This document shows, one piece after another, positions 773 to 57,076 of a stretch of 64,000 nucleotides of DNA (position 1 is the first letter of the stretch; each line of letters opens with the position of its first letter). The notes beneath the pieces were generated by a model. That model saw nothing but the letters and a program-made list of their open reading frames with translations, had not been told where the DNA came from and made no database searches. The stretch is from Perkinsela sp. CCAP 1560/9. Its lineage: Eukaryota > Protista > Euglenozoa: Kinetoplastea. The position numbers and the translations under genes are program-made. Location: NCBI GenBank assembly GCA_965644495.1, contig CBFFSA010000002.1:1302001-1366000 (forward strand), in the 5' to 3' direction.

Positions 773-1796
773 CAGGGGCGGTTGTTCGTTCCCCTAAGGA
801 AGAGTTTTTGCCGCCTTTTTTTCATACAGACCCCCTGGTGCCCCCTGGGTCCAAAAAACTGTTTTTTGGACGTTTTCTGTGTACACACCCGTTTTTTCCC
901 GATAATTTCATGTTTTTGTGGTTTATTTGAATTTGTGTAAGCTTAAATAGTCTTCTAATTTCTTTATGCTCAAGCAATGTTTCTGTAGAAACATCAATAG
1001 CTATTTAATAGAGTTTTTCAAACCTCAACAACATGAATACAAGACCGACTAACCCTAAAAGTGGTGAATATGTAGAAGGGTGGAAACTTGGCGAAAACAA
1101 TGGTAAAACAAATATTTTTTAAAAATATTTTCCCCTATTGTACTTTGTTAGTTTGGGACCTATACTCATACCTATGTGCTCTGTGAACACTTATGTGTGT
1201 TCAGTGGTTCTATGGTTCAATGAACACTTTTATGAACCAATAGAACACTTTTTCGATTTTTTTTCGTGACGTACAAACATTTTTTTTTGAAGCTTTGTTT
1301 CATTCAAATGGCCCCAGATGGTACTACACGACCTAGATCCTCACGTACATGTAGGTACATGGCAGAATAGGTGGTGCGAGTCTGTGCCATCGATATGATT
1401 CCAGCGTCAAGGGAGACCACGAAGAGGCCCCAACCCCCAGTTAGGCTGGCCTGAACACGTGTTAGGCGTTTAATCAATTCGGCACACGAACGGTTTTAAT
1501 GCATATAATGTATTCACAGTGCAAAAAGAATGTTTTGTGGAAATGACGACAACAAAGATGAGGAAAAAAATTCAAGCTTTTTCTTTGGGGAAAAAAGTCC
1601 CCTTTCACTTTTTGTGAAACCCAATTAAAAGTGACCCACCACTTTTTTTCTTCGTACAAGCGTCCGTTTGAGCTGATTTTTGTAGCATTTTGCAGATCTC
1701 AACACAAAGGCTTTGAGCGTGAAGAAACGAAACAAAAAGAAGCGAATACGTATATTTTAGAGAAGAACTAACATTTTGTCACTTTTTCACCTGCGA

Positions 1797-2130
1797 TCAC
1801 AACCTGTACATGATCCAAATACAACACCGCTCCCCACCCGTGTAAATGGGCGTGCTGTGGATCATACTTTGGGTCCACTCCTGAAGATCCATCCGAGCGG
1901 CATACGGCAGAGGGCTCAGTTCGTACAAACGTTTTGGATCACGGTTTAAAGCGTTAATGCGCCTTCTTACTAACTTCAAAGTAAAATGATGCTCCGGAAT
2001 CGATTTCCCCAAAACCAAAGTTTGGAAATGGGCCAACGCAAGACATTCCTGCATCCAAGCGAGAAGCTGAGGTACGAAGTGTGCTTCGAGGTAAGGTTGC
2101 GAGAACTGGCGGTAATAGCAAACCGCCTAA
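1797..2130 (-). pseudogene. VIPER/TATE-like (DIRS) RT-RNase H connection fragment
   Basis: VLGKSIPEHHFTLKLVRRRINALNRD...SPLPYAA resembles the trypanosomatid VIPER ORF3 segment (ILGxxLxxYxFxIKxVRRRLSALNR...LPxAA), recalled from memory. Truncated. Confidence 0.6.
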
Positions 2131-49574: not shown

Positions 49575-50219
49575 TTAATCAAGGTTTCGTCGCGCATTAG
49601 CGCTTTTTACAGACTGACGTATGTGCCGTCGGGATACCAAAAGAGGGGTAAACAAACTTCGAAGAAAACAAAATATAAGTACGAATAAAACAACCCCCAT
49701 AACAAAGGAATAAATATACCCCATCCTGCGTTGCCGCGCAGGTAGGAGTCTCATAAAAAGTCGCATACGTGCAGGATCCCCAGGAACCCGCGTGCCTCGA
49801 TAATACGCTGACGTTGGGTCTAAGAGTAGTGCCCGAGCCTGCTTAAGCTCAGACGCTCTGGCACGACCATGTGGGGAGTTGGGGTCACAAACTGCGGATT
49901 TAGTTTTAAAAGACCTTTCAATGTCATCTTTTGTTGCCGTGGCCGCATTTAATCCCAAAACGTGAAGAGGATCACTGTGGAGAAGAAAAAGTTCCTGCTC
50001 GCGTGCTTCGCCCGAGAACGTGTTCGCAGAGTCGTGAGTATGATTAAACATCTCCCAACCTCTTGCACTTGAGCTCGCCTGCCGAATATTCGACGTAAAA
50101 ATGGGAATGGCGGAGTCTATCGTGCCTGATCGGAGAGAACAATGGGAAACTACAGGTGCTGTATGACCTCGAAAGCGCTGTGCTAGGTAGCAAATAACGG
50201 CCTTTTTGCTACTATTCAT
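49575..50219 (-). CDS. Probable mitochondrial J-like domain protein with C-terminal TM helix
   Basis: Basic leader; DPLHVLGL...ATKDDIERSF (J helices I-II); HPD position reads DPN; LKQARALLLDP; one TM. Confidence 0.65.
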   Translation of the reverse strand: MNSSKKAVICYLAQRFRGHTAPVVSHCSLRSGTIDSAIPIFTSNIRQASSSARGWEMFNHTHDSANTFSGEAREQELFLLHSDPLHVLGLNAATATKDDIERSFKTKSAVCDPNSPHGRARASELKQARALLLDPTSAYYRGTRVPGDPARMRLFMRLLPARQRRMGYIYSFVMGVVLFVLIFCFLRSLFTPLLVSRRHIRQSVKSANARRNLD

Positions 50220-50410: not shown

Positions 50411-52213
50411 TTACCCTTCTAAAAGTGCGAACTGAAAATGAACCTGGGAGGCCAGCTTTTCTAAGCTGTCCCTTGCGGATTGTGGCGTGCAACCACGTGC
50501 TGCAATCCAACCCAATGCCGTGCTTCGATGGGGTGGTGGGTGAAGTTCCTGGCCCACAGACCAGTACAGCTGATGTCCTACGTAACAAGGGTCATCGAGA
50601 ACACTCGGTACCACCCATTGATCACGCAAAACTGCTGCCACCGAACATGGAGGGAAGTTTAAAGTAGCGACATATTGGTTCGCTGAGAGCGTATGCGGAT
50701 ATAAAGCTGGGGTGATAAAGTGAAACGTGTTTGTGTTGTCCGATGATTTGGAAGTTTCAGAGTTTCCTGCGTTCAAAAGGGGTGTAGTAGGGTGTTCAAC
50801 GTGAATTGCACTGATAAATTTCACTGTGGGATGCGCGGTGACAGGAAGCGAACAGTTTCGTAAAAACGTATTTTCCGCAAGCTTCCAGACATGTTCCTTA
50901 ATCGGATATGCGGCTTTCGCACGAGCATGAATGGTAGGAGAAAGTCCGCACGCGATGCGACAATATTGTACTGCCAGATCAATTCCTGTGACAGCTAAAT
51001 TCAGCGCGTGCGTTTCCGCAGCGCCGAGTCTGAGGTTGACTTCTACAACGTATGCTTTATTTCTGCGCATGTCATATTTGGCTTCAAAATGCATAACAGT
51101 GTTTAATTGCGAGCCATGTATGGCAACAAACTTTCTTGTGAGACAAATGAGCTTCTCCAGCGCCTCGCTCGGTAGCGCACTTGGGGCTAGTCCTCCCGAT
51201 TCCACAAAATATGGCGCACTATGCGGAGCGCAATTATCAGAAACCAAGGCATACTGTAAGTCTCCATGGTGAATGACGCAGTCAATGTCCACTTCTGGGC
51301 CTTCTATGTATTCTTCAATTAGCACAGAGAGTGGTGTACCTAGTGCATTCCAGTGATCTCGTTCCTTCTCATTGAAAGCAGATTGTGTGTTTGACAAGCA
51401 GCGGATAGGAGTCGATGGCGATTGCTCAGTATTCACGCGTTCGGATTCGTCGCTCACGTTTTCTTCATAAGGTAAAGTGGGTGGCGTTGGAATGTTTCCG
51501 CCATTTGATTTATTGAGAATACTCAATACGTTTTGAGCTGCACACTTGAGTTGTGCATAGTCTTCGCATTTTTGTACCAAAGCCCCACCAGCACCGGGAT
51601 TGGGCTTTACAATTAAAGGAAATTGTATCAAGTGCGAGCAGTGCACTGCTCGCATTTTTGTTCCCGTTTCTATTTTAGACATTCGGTCTGCATCAGTGAT
51701 TAGCCCGCCTTCATTGTCCGCCAATAAGCGAAGAATTCCTTGTAGTTCGCCCAACGTACGAATGCTACGACTCCATGGGGCGCACAACCCTGTGTCGTGG
51801 CACCAATTTCTAAATCGAGCTTTGTCATGAGTGCAACGGATTACCTCGACAGGCGCAGGACACGAAATTTTACCCAGAGCAGTTGCTAGCGCCGCGGCTG
51901 GATAAACCCCATACTCGTCGAAGGAGAGAACACCGTCAATAAGAGCTTCCGATGGGTAACTTCTTACTTGTAACGACTCAATTTCCTGTTGCACATGTGC
52001 TATCATAGGCTCAACCTTCTGCGTGTCGGTAAGAATCCATTTCCACACGTAAGGAGTCGCCCAACTTACAACATGGGGGTGTACCATCACTATGCGAACT
52101 CCCGATTCGTACAGTGTGCGATAGGCGACGACTCGACTGTCACTACTCGTCCTGACAAACAAGACGCATTTCCCTTCCAGCTCTTGCCCCTTGATATTCG
52201 GTGATGACATCAC
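50411..52213 (-). CDS. ATP-grasp ligase (carnosine synthase / L-amino-acid ligase-like)
   Basis: DGVLSFDE, HDKARFR, FPLIVKP..GAGG..V, LIEEYIEGPEVDID, HFEAK, VEVNLRLG. Confidence 0.85.
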   Translation of the reverse strand: MMSSPNIKGQELEGKCVLFVRTSSDSRVVAYRTLYESGVRIVMVHPHVVSWATPYVWKWILTDTQKVEPMIAHVQQEIESLQVRSYPSEALIDGVLSFDEYGVYPAAALATALGKISCPAPVEVIRCTHDKARFRNWCHDTGLCAPWSRSIRTLGELQGILRLLADNEGGLITDADRMSKIETGTKMRAVHCSHLIQFPLIVKPNPGAGGALVQKCEDYAQLKCAAQNVLSILNKSNGGNIPTPPTLPYEENVSDESERVNTEQSPSTPIRCLSNTQSAFNEKERDHWNALGTPLSVLIEEYIEGPEVDIDCVIHHGDLQYALVSDNCAPHSAPYFVESGGLAPSALPSEALEKLICLTRKFVAIHGSQLNTVMHFEAKYDMRRNKAYVVEVNLRLGAAETHALNLAVTGIDLAVQYCRIACGLSPTIHARAKAAYPIKEHVWKLAENTFLRNCSLPVTAHPTVKFISAIHVEHPTTPLLNAGNSETSKSSDNTNTFHFITPALYPHTLSANQYVATLNFPPCSVAAVLRDQWVVPSVLDDPCYVGHQLYWSVGQELHPPPHRSTALGWIAARGCTPQSARDSLEKLASQVHFQFALLEG

Positions 52214-52601: not shown

Positions 52602-53891
52602 TCATTTCTGCCTATTTTTTCTTTTCGCTCGTTTCCGCTCTTTTCTGATGGCTTTTTTACTTTGATTCTTGCTCTTAGATTTTCCTCCCCTCATGGCACT
52701 TTTACATCCTGGTGTAGGTGTCGGGTATATACCTGCAAAAAGATTTATCACGCCCGGGTTAGCCATTCCTGGTGTTTGGCGTGCCGATGAGGGAGGCTTC
52801 GCAGAGACATGATATTTTGCACTAGAACCTTGAACTACGCTAGGAAACAAGCCCCGCGTAACAGGATCAGCGATGTTGAGTATGCCCGGAATCCAGTGCA
52901 CTTGTAAATGACAATTTTCTTCGAACAGTAAATTTTGCAGTTCCTTGATCCATATCCATTGTCGTTTTTCTACAAACTGTTCGCGCCTTCGATCCGCCCC
53001 TCGCAGTATTAAATCTGCATCTGGTAAGAGGCATTTCTCAAACTTGATTTGTTCCAGTGCACGAACAAGTCCTATAGCATCACTGAAAACATGCAAGGTC
53101 CGCAGTCCAGTAAACGTGGCCAGCGCATGTGTAATTCCATGTACGGCCGCCAAGAGCTCCTCGTCATGGGTACCGCGCCTTATAAATTCCAAGCTGTACG
53201 CAGCACTTTCGATGGCAAAACGTGTAGGCGCGAGGTGAACCAGTCCCCAGCCATGACGCGAGGCATCAATAAAAACCGCAGAGGAACTGACCGGTAGCGG
53301 CTCGATGGTATGTTTACGCCTTCGGCAGCTGGCTCGTACTACGTTCCATCCTTCCGTTCCAACACAATAAAACAGATCCGTGACCATGTGACGAACCCAG
53401 TCCTCCATCTTCCACTGACTAAGAGTGATCAGCACCTTCTGACACATGCTTCGAGACTGCTCTACAAAGGATGGGTTGCCGCCGGGGTCTGGAGTATTCC
53501 GAGAAGCGCGGAAACGCCGTTTCGCTGCACGACTCTCCGCCCTATCTATCTGCCGGAAAACTGCTCTTCGTACTTGATCGATATGCGCCATTTTACGTAT
53601 TTGCCGTGTCTCGCTTGAACCTATTTCCCTTTCTAGCTTAAATCGGCTCTCTCTGACACCCAAATACGGTATATTATTTTGCTCTTGAGCATTTTTTTGA
53701 GCGTTTTTCTTTTTGTTTCTTTTTTTCTTCTTAGTTGTGAGTAAAGCAGAGGTTCCGTGAAAACAACAAAAACTAAAAGACTGTAACTTGTTTAGAATGG
53801 GTGTCGATAAATTTCCGCGCGTAAAGAACTTAGTAGAGGCAACTCCTGCACTCCTAACCATGAGTTTTCCGATCATCCCTATCATGGACAT
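52602..53891 (-). CDS. Retroelement-type (DIRS/VIPER) RNase H domain protein with mitochondrial-type leader
   Basis: SAVFIDASRHGWGLV, DEELLAAVHGI, HVFSDA, HWIPGILNIADPVTRG give a D-E-D-D tetrad. Intact frame, no RT domain. Confidence 0.82.
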   Translation of the reverse strand: MSMIGMIGKLMVRSAGVASTKFFTRGNLSTPILNKLQSFSFCCFHGTSALLTTKKKKRNKKKNAQKNAQEQNNIPYLGVRESRFKLEREIGSSETRQIRKMAHIDQVRRAVFRQIDRAESRAAKRRFRASRNTPDPGGNPSFVEQSRSMCQKVLITLSQWKMEDWVRHMVTDLFYCVGTEGWNVVRASCRRRKHTIEPLPVSSSAVFIDASRHGWGLVHLAPTRFAIESAAYSLEFIRRGTHDEELLAAVHGITHALATFTGLRTLHVFSDAIGLVRALEQIKFEKCLLPDADLILRGADRRREQFVEKRQWIWIKELQNLLFEENCHLQVHWIPGILNIADPVTRGLFPSVVQGSSAKYHVSAKPPSSARQTPGMANPGVINLFAGIYPTPTPGCKSAMRGGKSKSKNQSKKAIRKERKRAKRKNRQK

Positions 53892-54365
53892 TCCCACTTG
53901 CTCGACAGCATCTCGAAATATTTACTTGTGTATTCAAGTCAAAACAAGAAAAGATAGAACGTGTAATATTAAAATTCGTACGTTAGACAAAATAAAATTG
54001 TAGCACACCCTTTAAAATTTGTATCAAGCGGATATCGGAATCTGCTGGACTATTACAAAGATACAACGTATAGCCGCGCAACCTTTGCAAGTATGTATTC
54101 ACGGAAACCTTAAAAGTACATAAACGCAGAAAAGATTACGTTGGCGTCAGTCAGACAAAGCTGCTGGTCAGTACTGTTCCAAAGTTCAATAGTGTTTGGG
54201 TACATTTAAAATACATTTTTTAATCGATACAAGCTTCATATAATGTTTGCAGAATATTGAGTATTGTAGCATTAAAAGCGTAAAAACGCCAAGAATATAC
54301 TACATTGTGTGGCATGTTATGTAATATAGTAGAGCAGATCGCCGGCGGTGGGGGTACATTTAATA

Positions 54366-54947
54366 TTAAGTTGTAGCACTAACTGTATCAAATAGTGCCG
54401 TTTGCTTTGATAAATTTCCGGGATGTTCTTTTCCCTCGGCTGTGGCTTTCTGCGCGTTTGCCTCATTGTCCCGTACCAGATCTTCTGGACATCCCCCGTG
54501 GTCGTGTGCCATGCACGCCTCGACAACCCGACCTACACGGAAGTTGCCGCACTGCACACAGGCCTTCATTACCCAACTCCAGGTCTCACCATTCGACTTG
54601 ATCTTGTTCCGGTGCTCCATTTCCTCAATGATGTCCAACATCGCACACACTTTACTTTCCCCGGGTGTTGCATCCTTTTGCTTCTTCTCGCACTCGTAGA
54701 TTCTTTGAAGCGCGGTGTTGTACGTCGCTAGGTCGGGCGGAGTGTTTTGAAGATTCATTTGCACCATTAGATCTCCAGCTTCGTCGTAATATTGCACTTT
54801 TTTAATTTTTTCCATCCAGGGTTGGGTGTTGGTACTCACTTCATATCCAAACAGATCGTATTTCTTGGTCGAGGTGGCGCAGTGTCGGACAGCTGTAGGG
54901 ACAACCAATGTACCGACACAGGACACCAAACGGTGAAGTCGGCGCAT
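54366..54947 (-). CDS. p18: Mitochondrial F1-ATPase subunit p18 (euglenozoan-specific)
   Basis: KKYDLFGYEVSTNTQPWMEKIKK..YYDEAG, PPDLATYN, ESKVCAMLD, NEANAQKA..EGKEHPG closely match trypanosome p18. Confidence 0.95.
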   Translation of the reverse strand: MRRLHRLVSCVGTLVVPTAVRHCATSTKKYDLFGYEVSTNTQPWMEKIKKVQYYDEAGDLMVQMNLQNTPPDLATYNTALQRIYECEKKQKDATPGESKVCAMLDIIEEMEHRNKIKSNGETWSWVMKACVQCGNFRVGRVVEACMAHDHGGCPEDLVRDNEANAQKATAEGKEHPGNLSKQTALFDTVSATT

Positions 54948-55088
54948 CAATATGAAGCCAATATTAAACAAACAAATGTTTAAGAAATGAACGATCTAAG
55001 GTGATCTTGCGATACTACATGAGATCACGCTAGATCATAAAAGATTCTTTAGAATTATGCTAGATGTTTCTATTTGAAAAGATTTTCT

Positions 55089-56687
55089 TCAGATTTGTGG
55101 AGAATTTTCTAATTGCCGGGACTGTCTTTTCCCCTGAACTACGTTCCGAATGAAGAGTTCTCCTGCCTTGTAGCTGGAACGCACCATGGGACCACTGGCA
55201 ACATAGAGAAACCCCAAATTCTCGCCGTAAGACTTGTAGTGTTCAAATTCATCGGGGTGAACAAAACGCTCGACTTTTTTGCGGCTGCGGTCAGGCTGCA
55301 GATATTGACCCAGGGTGAGGAAGTCTACCCCCGCGTCTTTGAGATCCCGCATGGATTCTTCCACCTCGCGCATAGTCTCCCCGAGCCCCACCATGAGACT
55401 CGACTTTGTGAATAGCTTTGGGTTTACCGATTTCGCGTACCGCAGCACCTGTAAGGACTGGTCGTACGACGCACGACGGTCCCTAATATAGGGAGTAATC
55501 CGCCTAACCACTTCCAAGTTGTGGGCATAAACATGCAAACCACTATGTGCGACTTTCTCAATGCTACTCTGCTTCCCGCGGAAATCACCCACAAGACACT
55601 CAATGAGAAGATCCCGTGAGTCGTCACCCCCTGACACAACACAAGATTCCAATACCTTTTCGCTGTCCCCTTCGTGCGGCGTAATCTCATGTTCGGTGGA
55701 GTTACCCGGTTTCATAACCAAATCCTCCTTTTGTTGGTCATCACCTTCCCCTCTCCCCTCCCTCCTCCCCCGCAAAATCTCCCCAATCGTCCTCACCACA
55801 TGCCCCGCCCCCCCATCCGGAAGATCATCCCGGTCCACCATCGTAAGCACGACGTAGGACAGGTTCAGCCCCCGCAGGGCGTCTCCAATCCGCCGCGGCT
55901 CCCCCTCCTCCAGCGGCCTCGGGTGGCGCCGGGTCTGGACGCTACAGAACCGGCACCCCCGGGTGCACTCGTGGCCCATCATCATGACGGTGGCGGTGGC
56001 GACCCCGGAGTCCCCGCCCCCCCAGCACTCCCCGATGTTGGGGCACCGTGCCTCCTCGCACACCGTGGACAGGCGGTGGGCGCGCATCTGGGCCTTGAGG
56101 CGCAGGTAGTGGGGGTAGGCGCGGGGGCCCTTGGGGAGGGCGAGGCGCAGCCACGGGGGGAGGGGGGAGCGGCCGCGGGTGGTGGGGGAGGGAATGTTGA
56201 TAGGGTAGGTCGTGGTGGGGAGGGAGGGGGAGGAGGAAGTAGAAACAGAACTGTTGTGGGGCGTAGAGATCGTCTCTACAGTCTGTGTGTTGTTGTTGCT
56301 GGGAGACATAGAGATGGTCTCTATATTCTGTGTGGTGTTGGTGTTGTTGGGAGGCGTAGAAATGGTCTCTATATTCTGTGTGGTGTTGTTGTTGTTGTTA
56401 TTATTGTTGAGAGACGTAGAGATACTCCCCAGAATATCTTGTGTGTTGGTGTTGTTGGGAGGAGTAAACAGGTCAAAATCTTGAGGTCCGGGCTCGGAGG
56501 CGAGTCGGGTACGGAAGTTGGTGAGAAAGGTTTGTTGGGTGGGGGTGAGTTCGGGGTGGGTGGAATAGGGATGTGTGGTGGGGGATGTGATAGGGGGAGG
56601 GAAGGTATGGAGGTGGTGGGTGATGTGAGTCGGGGGGTTGAGCTTTGAGAAGGCTCGTAAAGAGGATAGGAGTTGGGTAGAATGCAT
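55089..56687 (-). CDS. LIAS: Lipoyl synthase, mitochondrial (ORF open to 56867)
   Basis: TVCEEARCPNIGECW, CTRGCRFC, VDRDDLPDGG, AHNLEVV, TKSSLMVGLGE, TLGQYLQP, SGPMVRSSYKA. Confidence 0.96.
   Translation of the reverse strand: MHSTQLLSSLRAFSKLNPPTHITHHLHTFPPPITSPTTHPYSTHPELTPTQQTFLTNFRTRLASEPGPQDFDLFTPPNNTNTQDILGSISTSLNNNNNNNNTTQNIETISTPPNNTNTTQNIETISMSPSNNNTQTVETISTPHNSSVSTSSSPSLPTTTYPINIPSPTTRGRSPLPPWLRLALPKGPRAYPHYLRLKAQMRAHRLSTVCEEARCPNIGECWGGGDSGVATATVMMMGHECTRGCRFCSVQTRRHPRPLEEGEPRRIGDALRGLNLSYVVLTMVDRDDLPDGGAGHVVRTIGEILRGRREGRGEGDDQQKEDLVMKPGNSTEHEITPHEGDSEKVLESCVVSGGDDSRDLLIECLVGDFRGKQSSIEKVAHSGLHVYAHNLEVVRRITPYIRDRRASYDQSLQVLRYAKSVNPKLFTKSSLMVGLGETMREVEESMRDLKDAGVDFLTLGQYLQPDRSRKKVERFVHPDEFEHYKSYGENLGFLYVASGPMVRSSYKAGELFIRNVVQGKRQSRQLENSPQI
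56255..56465. repeat. ~45-bp tandem repeats encoding NNTNTTQNIETISTPP in the LipA N-terminus
   Basis: Three to four imperfect copies plus an AAC/poly-Asn run. Confidence 0.8.
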
Positions 56688-57076
56688 GGAGAGTACGGAG
56701 TAAAATATACAACTTGGTTGAAGTGTATGTTGATAAACACGTAAAGTGGAGTGTGGTTTAGGTGACAAAAATGGCGTATGGTAAGGACCCCCTCTGACAG
56801 AGGTCCAACCATTTCTGGTATAAATCTTAAAGAGTTCAGTATACCATGTATTAGGGTATACAAGCACGAAATATAGAGTAGCACTTTTAGTGGTATAATC
56901 GGAATCGGATACGTACTAAGCAGTTAGTAAAAGTTACAGGTCTTTGTTTTGCTCCTACTAATTTCTGGTAATAATAAATAGTGTTTAAGTTTAGCATTCT
57001 GTGTCGAGTCAAAAGAAAGTAAAAAAAGCAATGGGAAAAGCAAATGGTTGCGCAACCTACCAAGAAGCTAGGCACG

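Follow-up and report, generated by a model that had tools for sequence, protein, structure and literature searches.

A probable domesticated retroelement RNase H gene beside the p18 gene in the kinetoplastid Perkinsela sp. CCAP 1560/9

We analyzed a 64,000-nucleotide stretch of DNA from the kinetoplastid Perkinsela sp. CCAP 1560/9 (the window: contig CBFFSA010000002.1 of assembly GCA_965644495.1, positions 1,302,001 to 1,366,000), and in particular one gene that encodes a stand-alone RNase H domain. This gene occupies 52602-53891 on the minus strand as an uninterrupted open reading frame (ORF) of 429 amino acids plus stop, with the ATG at 53891 and the stop codon at 52602-52604. As an earlier note made from the sequence of this DNA had described, it lies between the ATP-grasp and p18 genes and has the same orientation as the cluster. 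All of the neighbors in the gene run are also on the minus strand, in the order lipoyl synthase, p18, RNase H gene, ATP-grasp and J-like. We present evidence, which supports the reading well, that the gene is a domesticated retroelement RNase H. The features of the locus were as follows.

49575-50219, minus strand: J-like membrane protein gene, two genes downstream of the RNase H gene; a synteny anchor
50411-52213, minus strand: ATP-grasp ligase gene, directly downstream of the RNase H gene
52602-53891, minus strand: complete RNase H coding sequence (CDS), 429 amino acids plus stop, from the ORF call
53925-53960, minus strand: candidate trans-splice acceptor, a pyrimidine-rich tract followed by AG, 34 nt 5′ of the ATG; found by eye only
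54366-54971, minus strand: gene of ATP synthase subunit p18 (a PPR-like protein), directly upstream of the RNase H gene; a synteny anchor
55089-56867, minus strand: lipoyl synthase gene, a further neighbor

The frame of the RNase H gene is open for just 10 further codons 5′ of the ATG, and an alternative GTG start two codons 5′ of the ATG would give a protein of 431 amino acids. The identical protein sequence was called independently on an ENA contig (P0001). The pyrimidine tract and AG 5′ of the gene fit the expectation for a trans-spliced kinetoplastid gene. We also saw by eye a short upstream ATG with a 9-codon out-of-frame upstream ORF that overlaps the main start codon (53861-53890, minus strand).

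The protein could be divided into five regions, and the RNase H domain holds four catalytic positions. All coordinates below are on the minus strand.

53736-53891: residues 1-52, an acid-free, basic and hydroxylated N-terminus, by composition a candidate mitochondrial presequence
53667-53735: residues 53-75, a Lys/Asn/Gln-rich low-complexity stretch, absent from the relatives and lineage-specific
53307-53666: residues 76-195, a very basic linker (isoelectric point, pI, 11), predicted to be helical and without detectable relatives
52842-53306: residues 196-350, the RNase H domain (beta1-3, alphaA, beta4, alphaB, alphaD, beta5, alphaE), delimited by an AlphaFold2 (AF2) model, fold searches and hhalign
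53265-53267: D209 codon, first catalytic Asp, in beta1, DAS motif (alignment and model)
53157-53159: E245 codon, catalytic Glu at the start of helix A (alignment and model)
53079-53081: D271 codon, catalytic Asp directly after beta4 (alignment and model)
52866-52868: D342 codon, catalytic Asp of the N.AD motif in helix E (alignment and model)
52605-52841: residues 351-429, a C-terminal tail with a Lys/Arg-rich end (pI 12) and an RKERK motif that is common to the syntenic orthologue P0003

All four acidic RNase H positions claimed by the earlier note were in place, worded IDAS (D209), DEEL (E245), FSDA (D271) and IADP (D342). Its descriptions of the composition of the two ends of the protein were also confirmed. 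The first acidic residue is residue 70, and the C-terminal tail is Lys/Arg-rich with a pI of 12. The RNase H domain itself is mildly acidic (pI 6.2) and lies between the pI 11 linker and the pI 12 tail.

An exhaustive phmmer search of 1.84 billion representative proteins (cluster representatives) matched the protein itself, P0002 (E 4.7e-10), P0003 (E 1.3e-6) and nothing else. The family is known from these three sequences only. P0002 has 329 amino acids and comes from a JGI metagenome contig; P0003 has 323 amino acids as called and comes from a 722-kb ENA contig (locus L005). The three relatives are similar over only about 150 residues, at 26-31% identity. Within this segment DAS..GWG, E-L..(V/L)HG, D and W-(I/V)-P-G..N.AD..(S/T)R are invariant, so that the motif wording stressed by the earlier note, DAS..GWG and W-I/V-P-G..N.AD..(S/T)R, is common to all three. 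Beyond the gene itself, P0003 was all that word-indexed searches recovered, whether the query was the protein or the alignment, and the JGI metagenome contigs, when scanned, yielded no more than the contig of P0002. No chain was matched in PDB sequence searches with the protein or with the three-row profile. The N-terminal half showed no similarity to retroelement ORFs, where it might have corresponded to the reverse transcriptase (RT) connection region, or to the N-terminus of P0002, and an ESM-Atlas search with residues 60-200 gave no lead.

The gene of P0003 lies directly downstream of a p18 orthologue (51% identity) and directly upstream of a J-like orthologue (29%), in a block of genes on the same strand. 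The order p18, RNase H, J-like is shared with the window, and the catalytic tetrad is kept at about 28% identity. The ATP-grasp gene, which is interposed between the RNase H and J-like genes in the window, is absent from the L005 block; this difference (50411-52213 versus L005:6972-7180) represents a one-gene insertion or loss within conserved synteny. P0002 is also stand-alone, with an ANF_receptor gene downstream and no RT.

The p18 of the window is 53-67% identical to every named kinetoplastid p18 and groups (98% SH-aLRT) with EukProt PhM_4, the free-living prokinetoplastid Papus ankaliazontas. By this grouping, the organism lies outside the trypanosomatids that bear VIPER. The L005 p18 is a long branch and could not be placed in the p18 tree. 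The p18 gene is tandemly duplicated in Leishmania and on two environmental kinetoplastid contigs (L029, L030, L034); it is single in the window and in L005.

We searched the genome of the window (21 Mb, 110 contigs) for further copies. The RNase H gene had two matches, on contigs C2 and C13. The two copies are collinear at 99.0-99.5% identity including the flanks, over 4.3 kb and a further 9.7 kb, and therefore are haplotypes of one locus. In the other sequencing runs that were found, the contigs are DNA-like, belong to the same organism and represent the other haplotype; public runs of this organism have the same three CDS variants. The score of the family profile was 286 bits for the gene and never above 32 bits in the rest of the genome, there always in RT-containing ORFs, which indicates that the genome has no close element source or paralogue. 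Copy number and synteny, two checks that the earlier note had proposed, both turned out in favor of a host gene: there is one locus with two haplotypes and no near-identical RT-attached copy in the genome, and an orthologue is found in synteny.

The earlier note had also stated that no RT, recombinase, long terminal repeat or terminal inverted repeat is adjacent. This was borne out. The gag, recombinase and RT-RNase H (RT-RH) proteins of three elements, used as tblastn queries, found nothing within about 50 kb of the gene, their only match in the window being at about 1786-2027. No direct or inverted repeats bracket the gene. The distant match (1786-2027, minus strand) is a short RT-RH fragment of a tyrosine recombinase (YR) element, with 37-59% identity to L039/L040 proteins; it is the sole such piece found in the window with the three element queries.

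These results bear on the idea that the gene is a decaying solo retroelement fragment with a reading frame left open by chance. Element fragments abound in the genome and no RNA run carries the gene, both of which would suit this idea. However, 429 codons are open, no element parts are adjacent, and the same stand-alone gene recurs with its neighbors in a very divergent kinetoplastid, the two p18 proteins being no more than 51% identical. The tetrad and the motifs are invariant at 26-31% identity, although the flanking parts can no longer be recognized as related. On this evidence, an ORF open by chance or a solo relic of an element is hardly credible, and we rejected it. Since the frames are open and the active-site motifs invariant, although p18 is only 51% identical and the flanks cannot be aligned, we infer that the RNase H gene has probably been under long-term purifying selection. 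A single locus, the loss of element hallmarks and an orthologue in synteny (in one syntenic species) together make it well supported that the gene is a domesticated retroelement RNase H.

The retroelement kinship of the domain was assessed against the elements of the same genome. In this genome, matches to RT_RNaseH (PF17917) number more than 150, many of them within intact ORFs of 900-1400 amino acids, and those of the RNase_H type (PF00075) more than 140. Representative elements comprise a gag-like ORF, an overlapping ORF with a weak Phage_integrase match and an RT-RH ORF. The gag, recombinase and RT-RH layout is that of VIPER/TATE elements (PMC6681497, PMC5146736). The element RNase H domains of the genome do pass the PF17917 cut-off, and 20 distinct RT-linked domains were cut from them as a comparison set. 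Aligned by hhalign with these 20 domains, the three-member family gave a probability of 99% and an E of 9.6e-18 over 129 columns. By group, the closest was group C (RT-RH ORFs of 967-1397 amino acids, one copy with 162-nt direct repeats; E 1.5e-14, probability 98.3%). Next came group B, of recombinase-bearing elements (E 4.8e-10, 96.6%), and group A, of recombinase-bearing elements with gag, YR and RT-RH (E 9e-10, 96.5%). Comparatively, the probability was only 1.8% (E 0.027) for the Ty3-like RNase H of the genome and 0.7% (E 0.087) for its PF00075-type domains, which are of the non-LTR/cellular type.

In a 23-sequence alignment of the gene, its two relatives and the 20 element domains, D209, E245, D271 and D342 are invariant, and so are A210, S211, W215, G216, N339, A341 and R346. 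The best solved relatives of the 23-sequence profile were Ty3 Gag-Pol/RT (E 2e-5) and a caulimovirus polyprotein (RT/RNase H), ahead of cellular enzymes. Because hhalign was strong against RT-linked domains and gave 0.7-1.8% against the PF00075-type and Ty3-like ones, the comparisons of sequence support a retroelement-type RNase H, not a cellular RNase H1. This agrees with the view of the earlier note, the E values being 1e-10 to 1.5e-14 against RT-linked domains and the probability 0.7% against PF00075-type ones. A cellular RNase H1 paralogue was rejected as a candidate, with no PF00075 or PF01693 match and the same hhalign probability of 0.7%.

The earlier note had assigned the domain to VIPER/DIRS elements. 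Its retroelement type was upheld. A specifically VIPER origin is no more than possible, the family being sister to group C and not to the gag-YR-RT/RH group. In a maximum-likelihood tree, the three stand-alone proteins formed one group (87/85) that was sister to group C (90/87) and not nested within it. This tree is indicative only because all of the branches concerned are long. Each group C element, the closest element relative of the host gene, has one RT-RH ORF of 967-1397 amino acids, and at the group C loci fetched (L074, L075, L080, L081) no gag or recombinase was detectable. One group C RT-RH ORF, L074:5004-8479 (C31), is bracketed by perfect 162-nt direct repeats.

The sister position raises the question of direction. 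It could be that an old kinetoplastid host RNase H was captured by group C RT-RH elements, as group C stands well apart from the gag-YR-RT/RH groups, and the part of the literature available to us documents swaps of RNase H domains among retroelements (Malik and Eickbush 2001, cited in PMC6681497). However, the group C RT-RH ORFs are collinear with those of groups A and B over 360-470 residues, RNase H included, and the best solved relatives of the combined profile are Ty3 and caulimovirus RT/RNase H. Moreover, the host family amounts to three sequences in 1.84 billion clusters, whereas this type of RNase H is widespread in elements. Capture by elements is thus very unlikely, and we retain the descent of the host gene from an element.

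Two strong Ty3/gypsy-type RT_RNaseH matches, C78:19123-19506 and C76:17006-17401 (113 and 96 bits), lie in open frames of 1599 and 1315 amino acids, the former on a contig of about 24 kb. They differ from the other elements of the genome and might belong to a distinct LTR family or be foreign DNA.

The fold was modeled with AF2 from the 23-row alignment (pLDDT 81.4, pTM 0.77); from the single sequence the model was unusable (pLDDT 38). The order of elements, b1-b2-b3-aA-b4-aB-...-aD-b5-aE, is that of the RNase H type 1 fold, with D209 in b1, E245 at the start of aA, D271 just past b4 and D342 in aE. The top Foldseek matches in the PDB were all RNases H (HERV-K RT, E. coli HI, human H1; probability 1.0). 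In VIA-align, the model superposed on RNases HI without a basic protrusion (Z 14.4-13.1, root-mean-square deviation, rmsd, 2.3-2.8, about 120 residues), the best partners being those of Halobacterium, Rv2228c-N, LC11 and Sulfolobus. The nearest ESM-Atlas models were retroelement RNase H domains (TM 0.60-0.66, rmsd 2.2-3.0).

We propose that one RNase H domain was taken from an RT_RNaseH (Ty3/DIRS-like) retroelement and freed of its reverse transcriptase, and that N- and C-terminal extensions were newly gained around it. Selection would then have maintained the stand-alone gene in two kinetoplastid-like lineages at least, and probably in three. Because the four metal-binding carboxylates are at canonical places in a confidently modeled fold, the predicted activity is Mg2+/Mn2+-dependent cleavage of the RNA strand in RNA:DNA hybrids. 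The basic flanks probably supply nucleic-acid affinity, for which cellular enzymes have a hybrid-binding domain or a basic protrusion. As a whole, we consider it likely that this is a host gene for a domesticated retroelement RNase H acting as a hybrid nuclease, with import into the mitochondrion favored.

The location within the cell is the less certain part, and judged from the protein sequences we give a mitochondrial one about an even chance. Import is favored because the three relatives have just one targeting-like feature in common, a presequence-like start that is basic and hydroxylated. The first Asp or Glu is residue 70 in the window protein, 24 in P0002 and 45 in the L005 orthologue when the latter is extended to an in-frame ATG farther upstream (L005:5872), which lengthens it by 43 residues that are basic and acid-free. 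In the mitochondrion, removal of RNA primers or R-loops from mitochondrial DNA would be a plausible, if speculative, task. A role in guide RNA (gRNA) and mRNA metabolism, which the earlier note had also suggested, is implausible, since RNase H is inactive on gRNA:mRNA duplexes.

The same domesticated enzyme might instead be nuclear or nucleolar, acting on R-loops in polycistronic units or serving as a restriction factor against retroelements by prematurely degrading the RNA of their RNA:DNA replication intermediates. This would agree with the Lys-rich cluster at residues 53-75, with the Arg/Lys tail and its RKERK conserved in the syntenic orthologue, with a genome crowded with active-looking elements (the matches counted above, many of them intact) and with the lack of a PF01693 match in it. 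However, P0002 (pI 6.3) lacks any basic cluster, the Lys/Asn-rich stretch is low-complexity sequence confined to one lineage, and only the acid-free N-terminus is common to all three relatives. We therefore regard a nuclear site as unlikely and keep to the mitochondrial one.

Kinetoplastids are known to target a cellular RNase H1 to the mitochondrion, at least as far as the Crithidia RNH1 mitochondrial isoform is described in a citing source (cited in PMC2743194). In the Perkinsela genome, the hybrid-binding domain (PF01693) had no match at E 0.01, which does not establish the absence of RNase H1. It is a tentative suggestion, with more against it than for it, that early-branching kinetoplastids exapted an element RNase H as a mitochondrial hybrid nuclease which may replace the RNase H1 with a hybrid-binding domain. 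The short PF00075 ORFs that we inspected (L076, L077, L079) were retroposon fragments, and no canonical host RNase H1 was identified among them. Besides, C45:30765-46416 holds a tandem array of RNase H mini-ORFs that also stand alone but are of the other (non-LTR/cellular) type. Some 20 PF00075-type matches follow one another there at a spacing of 748 bp, and every one lies in an open frame of about 250 amino acids.

Several observations weigh against our interpretation. The RNase H gene was found in no RNA run, the single possible RNA run holding only a p18 fragment. The two haplotypes differ at three CDS positions (one non-synonymous and two synonymous), which are uninformative on selection, and the orthologues have diverged too far for dS. 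The profile search proposed by the earlier note gave a divided outcome: Pfam had no match for the window protein, whole or as the domain, up to E 10, but the family profile matched RT-linked RNase H domains. P0002 had only sub-threshold Pfam matches (RT_RNaseH, E 0.01; RT_RNaseH_2, E 0.002), at 16.5 and 18.5 bits against PF17917 and PF17919 cut-offs of 24.8 and 29.8. The input of the AF2 model was shallow, 23 rows that are mostly element domains. No RNase H gene was present beside p18 in T. brucei, Leishmania, Bodo saltans or three environmental kinetoplastids, and the named-species proteomes in the phmmer collection had no match to the family. The sampling of taxa is thin. The family is rare and of uncertain age, and the gene either is confined to certain lineages or was lost more than once. 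The Lys-rich stretch and the basic C-terminal tail could equally be read as nuclear or nucleolar signals.

The sole Pfam signal of P0003 was weak (E 0.04) and pointed to the C-terminal domain of the hepadnaviral polymerase. The RNase H of VIPER-like elements is reported to cluster with that of hepadnaviruses (PMC6681497), and the match is a small echo of that grouping, not evidence.

Among solved structures, the best superpositions were with Halobacterium RNase H1 (4e19), LC11-RNase H1 (3u3g) and Sulfolobus tokodaii RNase HI (3aly), with Z of 13-14.4. However, identity to these was only 12-18%, and the family profile alone found no sequence match with them. Cellular RNase H1, including the mitochondrial isoform of Crithidia RNH1, shares with the host protein the type 1 fold, the DEDD site and a plausible mitochondrial role on RNA:DNA hybrids. 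It differs in that the host protein has neither a PF00075 match nor a hybrid-binding domain and reaches an hhalign probability of only 0.7%. The kinetoplastid DIRS-order (VIPER/TATE-like) and related RT-RH elements have the same fold and the same DAS..GWG / E / D / N.AD..SR signature, and their RNase H, like that of the host gene, lacks a basic protrusion. In contrast to these elements, the host gene is not fused to an RT, has no gag, recombinase or repeats, and is single-locus and syntenic. Its product also has N- and C-terminal extensions of its own and a 20-25-residue insertion between helix B and helix D.

Domesticated retroelement genes are mostly derived from gag, envelope, integrase or protease. 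If our interpretation is true, the present gene is a clean case of a mobile-element nuclease turned host enzyme, with an intact active site and a position conserved across deep divergence. The domain of about 155 residues would also be a simple protein for studying the handling of RNA:DNA hybrids in the unusual mitochondria or nuclei of basal kinetoplastids. If the enzyme is a mitochondrial hybrid nuclease, it would give the kinetoplastid group its first enzyme of retroelement descent that serves an organellar genome. In the openly accessible literature, we found no account of a domesticated RNase H that stands alone in this way.

For kinetoplastids, a single domesticated retroelement gene has been reported, the VIPER ORF3-derived gene of Leishmaniinae (Ludwig and Krieger 2016, PMC5146736), in which the catalytic motifs were lost. 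Like the host gene described here, it is derived from the RT/RH of a YR retroelement, is single-copy and syntenic and has no element parts nearby. It encodes about 940-990 amino acids, keeps about 500 amino acids of ORF3 without conserved RT and RH motifs, adjoins a Ran-binding zinc-finger gene and is confined to Leishmaniinae (PMC5146736). Comparatively, the present gene consists of the RNase H domain alone with its catalytic residues intact, and it lies beside p18 in non-trypanosomatid kinetoplastids.

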